Assembly (NCBI RefSeq): GCF_001194135.2
Contig: NC_068988.1
Span: 19,676,351 to 19,711,683 of the forward strand
Source of the DNA: Octopus bimaculoides
Lineage: Eukaryota
Direction: 5' to 3'
Length of the DNA stretch: 35,333 nucleotides
Shown: positions 4,017 to 22,640 of the stretch, piece after piece
How positions within the stretch are numbered: position 1 is the first letter of the stretch
Layout of the letters: every line of letters begins with the position of its first letter
Position numbers and translations under genes: made by a program
Notes under the pieces: generated by a model
The model's database searches: none
The model's input: only the letters and a program-made list of their open reading frames with translations
What the model was told of the DNA's origin: nothing

Positions 4017-4290
4017 GTTCAGTAGTTTTATTTATATAATGTGCTGTCACTTCACTACCGAGCGTAGCTCTGTGCGCCTTGGGTATGTGCTGTGGTTTGC
4101 TGTGGTGCTCTTATGGTTACTGTATTGAAAGTGTTTTGCGTAGGATGTGTGCAGTACCCAGTAGTGCAATTTTCTGTATGTTATATATATTTGTAAGTCC
4201 TGGTGTTTTTGTTATGTATTTGTCTGAATATTTTTTTTATTATACCTAAGGCACCTACTATGATAGGAATTGTTTCTGTTTTTAGATTTT
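4017..4290 (-). mobile_element. R4/Dong-like (RLE-type) non-LTR retrotransposon, 5'-truncated 3' end (lineage 2)
   Basis: Minus strand reads NLKTETIPIIVGALGIIKK, then a 1-nt frameshift in the T8 run at 4231-4238, then YSDKYITKTPGLTNIYNIQKIALLGTAHILRKTLSIQ* (stop 4117-4119). A 3' UTR of about 100 bp follows and ends CTACTGAAC directly into (AAT)n. The C-terminus matches the other RLE fragments in the window. Confidence 0.8.
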
Positions 4291-4338
4291 CCTGATGTAT
4301 TTTTCCTTTCAATTGTTCTATTTCTATTTCTGATATTT

Positions 4339-4426
4339 TATTATTATTATTATTATTATTATTATTATTATTATTATTATTATTATTATTATTATTATTA
4401 TTATTATTGTTATTGTTATTATTATT
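4339..4426. repeat. (ATT)n microsatellite
   Basis: About 29 units, read directly. Confidence 0.95.
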
Positions 4427-4630
4427 AAGACGTTGAGCTGGCTAGCACGCCGGGCGAAATGCTTAGCAGTATTTCGCCTGCTGCTACATTCTGAATTCAA
4501 ATCCCGCCGTGGTCGTCGTTGCCTTTCATCCTTTCGGAGTCGATAGATTTAGCACCAGTCAAGCACTGGGTCGACTTGTCCTCTACCTAATAAAAATGGC
4601 TGGCTTTGTGGCAAAATTTGAAACCATTAC
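4427..4630 (+). mobile_element. tRNA-derived SINE family A, tail type A3
   Basis: Shares GAGCTGG..TAGCACGCCGGGCGAAATGCTTAGC..GAATTCAAATCCCGCC..GCCTTTCATCCTTTCGG with about a dozen other copies; ends GGCAAAATTTGAAACCATT. Confidence 0.85.
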
Positions 4631-4672
4631 AACTACTACCAAATAACAACAATTACTACTAATACTACTACT

Positions 4673-4862
4673 ACGGTGGTGCAGTAGCAGTATCATCACT
4701 GCACCGGACAGTATACTTAGATGCATTTCATCTGACTTTAGGTTCTGAGTTCAAATTTCACTGATGTCGACTCTGCCTTTCATCCTTTAGGGATCGATAG
4801 CATAAATATCAGTTAGGCAATGAGTCGAAATTGCTGACCTCCTGCCAAAATTTGAAGCCATT
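4673..4862 (+). mobile_element. SINE family A, diverged copy, tail type A3
   Basis: GTTCTGAGTTCAAATT..GTCGACTCTGCCTTTCATCCTTT..GCCAAAATTTGAAGCC, followed by (ATT)n. Confidence 0.75.
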
Positions 4863-5127
4863 ATTATTATTATTATTATTATTATTATTATTATTATTAT
4901 TATTATTATTATTATTATCATTAGTATTATTATTATTATCTTCTCTATATATCTATAAAAACTTCTGTTGAGTTACTTCAGTCCTACATATTATAATTTA
5001 TTATTATTATTATTATTATTATTATTATTATTATTATTATTATTATTATCATTATTATTTTGTAGTAGTATTAGTAGTAGTATTAGTAGTAGTAGTAGTA
5101 GTAGTAGTAGTAGTAGTAGTAGTAGTA
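4860..5127. repeat. (ATT)n, short spacer, (ATT)n, (AGT)n compound microsatellite
   Basis: ATT runs at 4860-4939 and 4999-5059; AGT run about 5063-5127. Confidence 0.92.
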
Positions 5128-8100
5128 GAAGCAGCAGCTATAACTGCGGCATCACTAACAACAGCGGCAGTAGTAATTTGAAGACCTACGAAAAGTAAAG
5201 AAAAAATTGCTGTTGCAACAATTGTATGCAGGCTTCACCTAAAAAGACAGCAGACAGGAAGAAAGTTTTATGCAATAATAGTAGTAATGCCGTTGCCTAA
5301 TTTCCCCCTTTTACGTAGCATTGTTTCATAATTAATTCTTTTAGAATTCTCGTATGAAACAACACTGCAGCAACAACTTCTACGCTACCAACAAGAGAAA
5401 AAATAATCGTCAAACATAGCAACATTGCAACATCGAATGCGCCATCTTCTGCAACAAAAAAGTTCAACGGTAGAAGAGGTACTGATTGAATGGGTACCAG
5501 AAGCGGATTCGTCGTCAATAGAAATAGATGAACGCAATTACCTAAACGGATACAAAGAATATAACATCATCTAACAAAATACAAACAGGAAAGATTACAG
5601 ACAAAAAAAAGTAAGAAATAAGAAAATAAATAGCCAAAGAAAGGGAAATTAATGGGAGTTGTGATAAAAAAAAAAGTAGAGGGAGACAGCGACTGTAAAT
5701 GCAGAAGCGGCAACAGCGCCAATAGCATTGACAGTAATAAATGAAAACAGCAACAAAAACAACTAACTTTAAAGCAATTATGGGACTCTTGAAGCAACAA
5801 CAAAATGTAGTAGATATAGCTTCATCAACATGAGCAACTACTACTGTATCGCTAATATGAAAAAGCAATAATAAGTGGTACGGGAATAGGATTAAAGATG
5901 CTTATAGCAATTACCCGAAATGAAATCCAATCTAATGATGAGAAAAACGGCAATAGTAAGAGCAATAAGAAGTGTAACAGCTACAAGAACTGCAGTTAGA
6001 AGAGCCAGTATTAGTGTAATAACAGCAACAGCGGTGAGAGTGGTGTAATAAAGGTGGTTGAGCATTGATATGTTAAGAGTACAAATAAGTAATACTTGAA
6101 GTAGAAGCAATTTTTAAAGTAATGGCTTTAAAGGGAAGATGACATATGAGTGAAATGAAGTGATAAATATATTTATATTGTAGAGATGGAAAACGGGGAA
6201 GGGGGAGAAAGAGACACAGCGGGTTATTTAAAGTGGGAGTGCGAGAGAGGAAAAATGAAAGATATAGGCGTAGGTATAGCAGTATAGCAAAAGAGGAGAG
6301 AGGGTGGGGAGAGTGACAGAGAGAGAGAGAGTTACATAGAGGAATGCAGAAATTACACGCAAGTATAACCTGAATGAAATAAATAATTTCAATAGGAATG
6401 TGAAGAAGTTAAACGAGACAAGAAAATAAGATCGAAGGAATTTATGAATGAAGGCGATAGAAAAAGGCATATTGAGCAGTATAGTTAATTCAGCTGTTTA
6501 AATATGATAATGGTTAAAATGATGCCATTATGCTACTGAGCTGTGAGAGTATTAGTAATGCTGAGTTTATATAACTGCCTATTTGCCGGCGTAACTATTT
6601 TTACTGAATCCCTACAATCTTAAAATATATAGATGATTCACACGGGTATGGATATATTAACTCATGGAAATACACAAGTATACTCGTATGAACATATATA
6701 TATATATATATATANNNNNNNNNNNNNNNNNNNNNNNNNNNNNNNNNNNNNNNNNNNNNNNNNNNNNNNNNNNNNNNNNNNNNNNNNNNNNNNNNNNNNN
6801 NNNNNNNNNNNNNNNNNNNNNNNNNNNNNNNNNNNNNNNNNNNNNNNNNNNNNNNNNNNNNNNNNNNNNNNNNNNNNNNNNNNNNNNNNNNNNNNNNNNN
6901 NNNNNNNNNNNNNNNNNNNNNNNNNNNNNNNNNNNNNNNNNNNNNNNNNNNNNNNNNNNNNNNNNNNNNNNNNNNNNNNNNNNNNNNNNTATATGTTAGA
7001 GGTAATACTTGACAATTGTAAGCACCTGTGTATGCCAGCTCGTGGTTGAGGTGAAAGAATATATTGTAAATGCAAAAATAAAAACAAAACACAAAGGATT
7101 CTGCGGTACACGTGTTTCAAGCTTTATAGTTGTTACATCAGTGTATAATTGACAGTATAAAGCTATCTTCAGCCGCAAATGTATTCTCTCCCAAGTATTA
7201 TATCGCATAGACGTTAAAGGAGGAAGAAAGATGAGATATAAAAGGTGAGGTTCCGTTTGGTATTTTGCATTGTAATATACCTCGTAGAATTCTTAATTTG
7301 ATATATTTATACATAATTTCCTCGGTACTCCGGAATCCGTCCATACCTTGCCACAGTTTTGTTATGATCAGACAAATTCTAACGTAAAAGAAAGGGGTAA
7401 ATTTCTGATCGCAACAACAGAAATTGTTCAAACAGGGAAATTAATGTTCGAAAATTGAGATTATATCCAGTCCTCAATTGTTTAAAGGTAGGTGGTGAAC
7501 GGTCCGACCAGTATGCAGCTCCGTTTCCCGTTTTGGTACTATCTACGCCAAGCTCCAGCTGTCTAATCAAGTCCCGTTTTTAACAGGAAGTACGAGATGA
7601 CCTGCCTTGCTCGTTAGCAGGGAGCCAACGAGATTACCTGTCTCTTTCCATGTTAACTTCCTGTGTATATATTTGTTATCCATTTCACATCTGCCAAAAG
7701 ACCGTTGACAAACGTTTATCACGCCACCTTCGGAAAATATTGTAAGTTCTCAACCTTCATTATATTATAGGTATACATAACAATATATATATNNNNNNNN
7801 NNNNNNNNNNNNNNNNNNNNNNNNNNNNNNNNNNNNNNNNNNNNNNNNNNNNNNNNNNNTATATATATATATATATATATATATATATATATGAGTATAC
7901 ATACATATGTGTGTATGTACTAGTGTGTGTTGAACGCGTTGTGGGAAGTCAAATATTCGGATATTCAGATGCATGTACTTACTGCTTATAAGAAGGCAAC
8001 ATGCTATATTATGTGAAAGGTGCGGTTAAATTCCATACGAACATTTCTACATAAGTATCTGTATATAACGTACTTAGGGATTATACGTAAAAGTAACAAG

Positions 8101-21718: not shown

Positions 21719-21996
21719 GTAATATTTTTTTTTATTGTTCTTTGGTATTGTATGTAATGAAATGGGAACTAATTAAAATGAATGAATAATGAGGAAGGCA
21801 GGAGAGGAGGGCCGAAAGAGAAGTTGTGTGAAAGGAAGACGAAGAGAGAGAGAGGGGGGGGAGAAATAGGTCATCGAGTATGGAAACTATGCTTGTTCCT
21901 AGTATTGTCATCATCTCGTTACCTAAAGATTCAGATTCGATAATTTGCGCCAGAAAAACAAGTATTGATTTTATTATCGTTGCATCTGTTGATAGT

Positions 21997-22066
21997 GTTG
22001 TTGTTGTTGTTGTTGTTGTTGTTGTTGTTGTTGTTGGTGGTGGTGGTGGTGGTGGTGGTGGTGGTG
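21997..22066. repeat. (GTT)n-(GGT)n compound microsatellite
   Basis: Read directly. Confidence 0.95.
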
Positions 22067-22143
22067 ACAGTATGTGATGGTGCTGCTACTGCTATTACTA
22101 CGACTATTAGTGATAATATAATACTAATACTACTCCTAATATT

Positions 22144-22368
22144 AATGGCTTTCAAATTTTGGCAGAAGGACAGCAGTTTGGGGGAAGGGGCTAAGTCCGG
22201 TCACATCGACCTCAATGTTTAACTGGTACTTATAGTGTCGACCGACCCCGAATCGATGAAAATCGACCACAGCGGAATTTGTACTGGTAACGTAAAGACA
22301 GAAGAACCGCATTTTGCCCGAAAGCATTGTATCCAGCGTGCTAATGTTTCTGCCAGCTCGCTGCCTTA
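22144..22368 (-). mobile_element. SINE family A, full length, tail type A3
   Basis: Head reverse complement TAAGGCAGCGAGCTGGCAGAAACATTAGCACGCTGG; tail ..CTGCCAAAATTTGAAAGCCATT. Confidence 0.85.
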
Positions 22369-22455
22369 AATAATAATAATAATAATAATAATAATAATAA
22401 TAATAATAATAATAATAATAATAACAATAATAATAATGATAATAATAATAATAAT
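22369..22455. repeat. (AAT)n microsatellite
   Basis: 29 units with two variants. Confidence 0.97.
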
Positions 22456-22548
22456 AGCACCACAGTAAACCACAGCACATACCCAAGGCGCAGAGAGCTG
22501 CGCTCGGCAGTGAAGTGAAAGCACGTTATAAAAATAAAACTACTGAAC
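22456..22548 (+). mobile_element. R4/Dong-like lineage 2, 3'-UTR-only copy inside (AAT)n
   Basis: 86/93 identical by manual alignment to the reverse complement of 4017-4109; (AAT)n lies directly on both sides. Confidence 0.85.
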
Positions 22549-22560
22549 AATAATAATAAT

Positions 22561-22640
22561 ACAGCACTGCTTGGAACCACCCGAATACTCCGGAAGGTGC
22601 TCTAAAAATGAGATCGTGGAGCTGGACAATTTCTTCTACA
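22561..22640 (+). mobile_element. R4/Dong-like lineage 3, extreme C-terminus plus start of 3' UTR
   Basis: Directly after (AAT)4, ACAGCACTGCTTGGAACCACCCGAATACTCCGGAAGGTGCTCTAA translates to TALLGTTRILRKVL* (22561-22605), matching ALLGTAHILRKTL and SALL..LRKVL in the other fragments. Confidence 0.68.

Follow-up and report, generated by a model that had tools for sequence, protein, structure and literature searches.

Among the retrotransposons of the R4 clade, Dong elements are reported to target TAA repeats in Bombyx, Anopheles and the snail Biomphalaria, according to a passage of PMC3812793 that cites Kojima and Fujiwara 2004, and PMC7998251 reports the same habit for 'most insects, mollusks and cnidarians'. 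The Bombyx Dong carried seven upstream TAA repeats when it was assayed, and a self-cleaving 5' ribozyme resembling that of hepatitis delta virus (HDV) has been shown for both Dong and R4 (PMC3774820). R4/Dong elements are described as lacking N-terminal zinc fingers and as carrying a divergent Myb/SANT-like N-terminal domain (PMC7998251). In octopuses, the repeat library of Octopus bimaculoides includes a full-length Dong (PMC9115989), octopus-specific Dong-R4 expansions have been described (PMC8967140), and O. vulgaris has five recently active Dong-R4 families with 1129 near-full-length insertions, compared with 13 recent insertions annotated as Hero (PMC13282606). Target specificity is absent from most HERO families; some are specific for microsatellites (PMC4640811). 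No explicit statement on the AAT flanks of octopus Dong was found in the literature that we searched, but such flanks would be expected of these elements. Here, we analyzed a stretch of 35,333 nucleotides from O. bimaculoides (contig NC_068988.1, positions 19,676,351 to 19,711,683; hereafter, the window), in which an original prediction, made from the letters alone, had proposed several co-existing TAA-specific lineages of Dong-like elements occupying AAT tracts.

Our analysis indicates that the window very probably contains dead copies, most of them truncated at the 5' end, from at least three Dong/R4-type lineages, which would insert specifically into (TAA)n/(AAT)n through target-primed reverse transcription (TPRT). 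The original interpretation is supported by the presence of AAT at both 5' and 3' ends, by three types of C-terminus and 3' untranslated region (3'UTR) and by other copies; the literature confirms its premise that insect Dong targets TAA and extends it to molluscs (PMC3812793, PMC7998251). As in Dong of Bombyx mori, DongAg of Anopheles and DongBg of Biomphalaria glabrata, the elements would have a single open reading frame (ORF) in which the reverse transcriptase (RT) is followed by a CCHC motif and a restriction-like endonuclease (RLE), and their copies end in and lie within (TAA)n/(AAT)n, 5' truncation being common (PMC3812793, PMC7998251, PMC3774820). They also resemble the annotated Dong-R4 families of O. 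bimaculoides and O. vulgaris, which come from the same genus, probably even from the same genome, and likewise comprise several co-existing families; those papers give abundance and activity, not insertion sites, and the window fragments are not matched to named library entries.

The window is AT-rich, crowded with tRNA-derived short interspersed elements (SINEs) and microsatellites, and interrupted by 13 runs of N. We inventoried its fragments by translation and by tblastn over its whole length, using eight full-length relatives as queries, and obtained five, termed A to E; the tblastn search with these relatives found no further Dong-like fragment in the window. The anatomy, flanks, family relationships and copy numbers of these fragments are shown by this analysis. 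No listed gap falls inside any fragment or at any junction, and three gap-free stretches hold all of them: 468-6714 (C), 14457-16879 (A and B) and 20686-22687 (D and E).

Contact with AAT was scored when a tract on the sense strand lay no more than 5 bp from the oriented end of a fragment. As the original prediction had held for every RLE-type fragment, all five carry AAT on their own sense strand. All three scored 3' ends run into (AAT)n, C into (AAT)7, A into (AAT)14.7 and D into (AAT)4, which bears out the junctions proposed at 4017, 15830 and 22548. At the 5' side, four of the five fragments (B, C, D and E) abut (AAT)n. The truncation points proposed directly after (AAT)n at 15875, 22456 and 22561 are all visible in the sequence, and C, which had not been listed, adds a fourth; the exception is A, whose 5' end lies at a reversed SINE-like piece. 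A random oriented end would abut sense-strand AAT within 5 bp with a chance of about 1e-3. The chance of four out of five 5' ends doing so is about 5e-12, and even two out of three would have a chance of about 3e-6. The original observation is real and far beyond chance and, with the corrections given here, is partly confirmed.

Independent checks were made with contigs and raw reads from sequencing runs of the same species (X2, X6, X17 and X18), raw-read depths being measured at roughly 0.7x coverage. The loose ends in the contig runs are mostly subfamily break points, and a handful of same-species junctions beyond the window, taken from the best-supported loose ends and joints, was readable. 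Among these copies, further truncation points are joined to AAT at positions corresponding to 4215, 4243, 15909, 15915, 15921, 22496 and 22512. In run X18, many raw reads contain the palindromic linker AGGTTCGTCCATCGATCGATGGACGAACCT, which dominates the loose-end tables; because of this linker, we regard X18-X20 as proximity-ligation libraries.

Fragment C (4017-4333, minus strand) is the C-terminus of an RLE-type element lacking long terminal repeats (a non-LTR element), together with its 3'UTR. Its translation reads ...TIPIIVGALG...IQKIALLGTAHILRKTLSIQ up to a stop, followed by a 3'UTR of 106 nt (4017-4122) that was placed in what we call family 1 by sequence comparison and read depth. The family-1 C-terminal coding part (4123-4288) reads NLKTETIPIIVGALGIIKK, a frameshift and then YSDKYITKTPGLTNIYNIQKIALLGTAHILRKTLSIQ, with the stop codon at 4123-4125. 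Deleting one T at 4231 repairs the reading frame, and about half of the genomic reads do not have that T; the resulting reconstruction of 65 aa matches a UniRef protein of O. bimaculoides at 91% identity. On the sense (minus) strand, the 3' end is followed by (AAT)7 at 3996-4016, located by a repeat scan, and contigs of other copies also go on with ATT before 4018. Immediately downstream of this end, 3826-4016 forms a compound microsatellite, (TTC)12(TTA)17(TCA)29(ATT)7. At the other end, a tract of about 31 AAT units (4334-4427, minus strand as sense) was found by the repeat scan, and a plus-strand SINE head comes next at 4430. Between this tract and the family-1 homology lies a stretch of 45 bp (4289-4333, minus strand) in which the frame is open (SEIEIEQLKGKIHQE) and the depth is about 3-5% of that of its neighbours. 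Past 4288, other family-1 copies run on as CCACATTCGAGTTACC..., which on the sense strand reads LEIEVTRMW. The stretch is either a minor subfamily or filler. Since the similarity of C to the main family ends at 4288, the 5' junction of C is either direct or 45 bp away from the tract.

Fragment D (22451/22457-22548, plus strand) was recognized by its similarity to C and consists of 3'UTR only, namely the last 92-98 nt of family 1. It is identical to C at 84 of 92 positions (91%, z = 34) and, judged by this comparison, is a member of the same family; contigs that reach 22451 extend into the upstream sequence of C. Its 5' flank is (AAT)29 (22369-22456, plus strand), just beyond where the reversed SINE at 22147-22368 has its head, and the junction shows the microhomology ATAA(T/G)A. 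Its 3' tail, an (AAT)4 tract at 22549-22560 (plus strand) found by the repeat scan, also serves as the 5' flank of E.

Fragment A (plus strand) contains an RLE domain and C-terminus at 15284-15735 (RRPDIV..IINV..KD...KERKK, then a frameshifted LQKSALL..LRKVLSV), followed by a 3'UTR at 15736-15830 that ends in ...GCGACGCCCTA and runs into (AAT)14.7. It is decayed, with stops and frameshifts, and N replaces the catalytic D in IINV. Its raw-read depth is 100-460, with the majority of reads less than 90% identical, and a word-indexed protein search with this decayed fragment gave no matches; A represents an old, low-copy, decayed lineage. Its 5' end, at about 15284-15299, borders a reversed SINE-like piece at ~15190-15297. 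The passage of its 3' end into AAT was confirmed by an exact contig of 261 bp in runs X6 and X17, covering 15690-15853.

The (AAT)14.7 tract (15831-15874, plus strand), seen both in the repeat scan and in contigs, serves A as 3' tail and fragment B as 5' flank. The latter (15875-16320, plus strand) is an RT piece reading QGIFQG...FMDDLKL...GYKYL, which corresponds to about aa 600-760 of the full-length relatives. Its 5' truncation sits directly at the AAT tract, and this junction was confirmed by an exact contig of 54 bp from run X2, at single-copy depth, covering 15853-15906. The 3' part is missing from ~16311-16321, where other copies go on as ...AINTWAVS..., and the raw-read depth of B is about 500-690. 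B matches RVT_1 weakly (E = 0.0011, under the Pfam cut-off) and aligns over 140 aa with RVT_1-bearing proteins with E values down to 1e-29. By itself B is an RT piece, and it is through its full-length relatives that it would be of RLE type; it cannot be assigned to the C/D, A or E lineage.

Fragment E (22561 to ~22640, plus strand) comprises 14 C-terminal codons (TALLGTTRILRKVL and a stop) and about 35 nt of 3'UTR. Longer copies of E read ...LQK ahead of 22561, and downstream of it reversed SINE-like sequence extends as far as the gap at 22688. In four runs of the species, no contig matched 22569-22687, a stretch that takes in the larger part of E together with its flank, at 99% identity, so that E and its junction at 22561 are uncorroborated. 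Unique parts of the window are present in these runs, and this gap-edge sequence may be unreliable.

The comparison of these fragments supports three co-occurring lineages, C/D, A and E. Their last 14-20 codons clearly differ, and so do their 3'UTRs; the former agrees with the homologous but distinct C-termini that had been described for C, A and E. The same prediction had counted the 3' ends at 4017, 15830 and 22548 as three lineages; they represent two, because D is of the same family as C, and it is E that supplies the third. Its statement that the 3'UTRs look unrelated holds for C/D against A and E, and has to be modified for A and E, which share a weak similarity (z = 5). We also considered that the 3'UTR of E might simply be unrelated to the others, and rejected this on account of its weak likeness to that of A, after which reversed SINE-like sequence follows.

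An exhaustive HMMER search with B yielded the eight full-length relatives, proteins of 1052-1304 aa that are metagenome or Logan entries. Each of them contains RVT_1 (E 1e-21 to 1e-27), a CCHC motif (CR.C...ET..H....C) and the nuclease motif RPD...D...D...EK, in the order RT, CCHC, RLE. Together with the alignment of B, the RVT_1 matches identify a non-LTR RT, and the nuclease motif, present in all eight relatives and, as a mutated copy, in A, predicts nuclease activity. In all eight, the C-terminus (...VVPIVVGALG...LQKxALLGTAxILRKVL) aligns with A, C and E. The best match to a solved structure was R2, both by sequence (1e-29 versus 1e-19 for LINE-1) and by fold over about 1100 columns (8e-20 versus 2e-11 for LINE-1). 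These relatives therefore share with R2 (Bombyx R2Bm and the R2 of birds and turtles) the order RT, CCHC, RLE and, by analogy, would share TPRT at a repeated target. In contrast to R2, which lies in 28S ribosomal DNA (rDNA) and has N-terminal zinc fingers and Myb, the flanks here are (AAT)n instead of rDNA, and none of the eight relatives shows a C2H2 finger in its first 450 aa. Their N-terminal block (W..EN...Y..S.P...GYRKRM..W) is confidently predicted to form a four-helix domain (predicted local distance difference test, pLDDT, 89). A Pfam search of this block gave no match, including to Myb/SANT, and the best fold matches in the PDB, a homeodomain and the TRF1 Myb, were non-significant (template modelling, TM, score 0.42-0.53; E >1).

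Related loci from other marine animals were available as long-read contigs. Three sets of entries were each counted once as a single locus: L003-L012 (one locus in ten Tara samples), L013-16 and L017-19. At the nucleotide level, no similarity of these loci to the window was found beyond the microsatellite. All eight of their 3' ends run into (AAT)n. In L001, L013-16 and L022, (AAT)n lies to either side of the element, and in L001, L013 and L022 these two flanking tracts are the sole AAT tracts in 16-20 kb. L017-19 is a tandem array of three elements arranged head to tail with (AAT)n between them. A target of the Dong type, with the repeat on both flanks, is thus found in the window, in same-species copies and in loci of other animals. 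Across the samples of L003-L012, a single insertion has an (AAT)n tail of anywhere between about 5 and 17 units (L003 1707-1727, L012 1022-1075), which behaves as a polymorphic microsatellite. At gathering scores, Rfam found no HDV-like ribozyme in the window, L001, L013, L014 or L017, nor any up to E 10 at the 5' end of L013, a type of ribozyme that sequence models catch poorly. Two further observations concern these loci. A tandem repeat of about 31 bp, ACAACATTGAATGAATTAACATAATCAGTTA, occupies L017 7380-7520, where the array's first element has its 5' edge. In L020, about 2.5 kb upstream of the Dong-like element, a gene with a Pfam match to the Pox_A32 packaging ATPase (2664-3362, minus strand) may belong to an element of the Polinton/Maverick type.

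Established knowledge of R2 and Dong lets us infer how such copies most likely arise. The element would encode, in its single ORF, a protein with RT, CCHC motif and C-terminal RLE that binds the (TAA)n duplex, and the RLE would nick one strand of the repeat. The (UAA)n end of the RNA would then pair with the nicked repeat and prime cDNA synthesis, which would often abort, the truncated 5' end being rejoined into the same repeat. Such targeted TPRT and rejoining would leave every copy ending in (AAT)n, with truncated copies also preceded by (AAT)n. As the repeat would remain on both sides of each insertion, later insertions could take place beside earlier ones, and the head-to-tail pairs A-B and D-E may have formed by repeated insertion into one repeat.

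Several points weigh against this reading. A has no AAT tract at its 5' end, the 5' junction of C is possibly 45 bp off its tract, and E is uncorroborated by independent contigs. A few same-species contigs have non-AAT 5' flanks, at 4215 (X6) and at 22511 and 22532 (X17), and the L020 element is also without a 5' AAT tract. Among the 11 AAT/ATT tracts of the window, six occur without a Dong fragment, some of them being SINE tails. The 5' AAT evidence comprises window ends, a handful of contig junctions and the loci of other animals, not a genome-wide count, and the R4/Dong assignment comes from architecture, target and published octopus annotation, not from an RT tree.

Some of these points would suit elements whose insertion is untargeted, (AAT)n being only a 3' tail encoded by the element and the 5' AAT reflecting chance location downstream of Dong or SINE tails. 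In two of the four cases, B and E, the 5' AAT flank is indeed also the tail of the copy upstream (A and D, respectively), the octopus SINEs of the window add tracts through their (ATT)n-like tails, and some 5' flanks are non-AAT, both in contigs and in L020. However, hitting the very end of another copy's short tail would itself need targeting, the chance per end being about 1e-3. C and D are preceded by long tracts, neither of which is an upstream Dong copy's tail, and in L001, L013 and L022 no AAT tract other than the flanking pair lies within 16-20 kb. An element-encoded tail alone would thus not explain the 5' AAT tracts and, with TAA targeting documented for Dong (PMC3812793, PMC7998251), we regard untargeted insertion as very improbable. 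The pattern could also be in part artefactual, stemming from the fragmented state of a draft assembly in which contig ends would have been misjoined at repeats near microsatellites and gaps. The window has its 13 runs of N, the stretch 22569-22687 is missing at 99% identity from the contigs of four runs, and 40 bp (cggttgttaacgatggctcctgttaacgccctcttaatta) are duplicated on either side of the 10-N gap at 458-467 (window 418-506). This duplicate looks like an unmerged contig overlap, and the gap is therefore probably artificial. Nevertheless, the junctions from A to AAT and from AAT to B are matched exactly by contigs of other runs, the same pattern recurs in long-read contigs of other species, and the doubt about the assembly affects only fragment E. 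An artefact is thus hardly credible.

A different question is whether AAT-targeting elements of another RLE clade, such as HERO, are responsible instead of R4/Dong. Microsatellite-specific HERO families exist (PMC4640811), and our placement in R4/Dong is a putative one. In addition, the two features described for R4 and Dong, the HDV-like ribozyme at the 5' ends of related loci (Rfam) and a significant Myb/SANT match in the N-terminal domain of the relatives, were not detected. On the other side, the published octopus annotation lists Dong-R4 as abundant, with several families, and Hero as rare (PMC13282606, Table 1), and the O. bimaculoides repeat library holds a full-length Dong (PMC9115989). 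The TAA target is the hallmark of Dong, and the relatives are without N-terminal zinc fingers, which fits the description of R4/Dong in PMC7998251. Another RLE clade is thus very unlikely to account for these fragments, and R4/Dong lineages that target AAT remain the explanation that we favour.

Family 1 is represented by very many copies of its tail. In the raw reads, the depth is about 15,000 over the core of its 3'UTR and about 2,000 over its C-terminal coding part, so the last 100-170 nt are roughly seven times commoner than the family's own coding region. The 3' end is present in on the order of 2x10^4 copies, mostly very short (<170 bp); in this it differs from Dong, DongAg and DongBg, to which it is likened by description. 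Across the last ~170 nt (window 4074-4190) the depth climbs from ~3,000 to ~15,000, with steps close to motifs that are A/T-rich and TAA-like, for instance CCATAAGAG at 4108-4116. The depth steps and the microhomology of D suggest that microhomology joined the ends at truncation hot spots, or that a tail-only derivative exists. It is possible, if doubtful, that the tail is a distinct tail-only, non-autonomous parasite of Dong or the product of microhomology-guided 5' joining, and that in either case Dong would be a major source of octopus AAT microsatellites, one that reinforces itself because each insertion creates new targets.

The SINEs of the window are also associated with such tracts. 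Four of its roughly nine tRNA-SINE heads (4430, 22368, 29381 and 29523) abut an AAT/ATT tract, in either orientation, and the SINE tails at 4860-5085 and 22100-22147 are variable trinucleotide repeats, for example (ATT)n, (GTT)n and (ACT)n. The SINEs may thus be a source of these tracts and also have a preference for them. That Dong made all AAT tracts of the window was considered and rejected: with six of 11 lacking a Dong fragment, several of them at SINE tails or heads, the tracts cannot all have been made by these elements. The window also contains two pieces of non-RLE long interspersed elements (LINEs), neither of which contacts AAT. One (707-1159, minus strand) has an ORF like that of an apurinic/apyrimidinic (AP) endonuclease and lies near (AGAT)24 at 1233-1328; the other (32448-32738, minus strand) is the C-terminal part of an RT (..LVYCSQLRSPQ..).

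The phenomenon described here is already known, since TAA targeting by Dong, including in molluscs, and the presence of multiple Dong-R4 families in octopus have both been published. Insertion into AAT is a known habit of the Dong family, and our finding is therefore real but ordinary. The very many tail-only copies of family 1 are its sole mildly unusual aspect and might merit a closer look. A genome-wide table of octopus junctions appears to be unpublished, and would be a modest, confirmatory addition. The finding has its main use in annotation, where the stretches should be masked as Dong-R4 fragments, and the adjoining AAT tracts read as targets and tails, not as independent features. More broadly, the window illustrates how mobile elements persist through target-specific insertion into a harmless repeat, and how their copies pile up head to tail.

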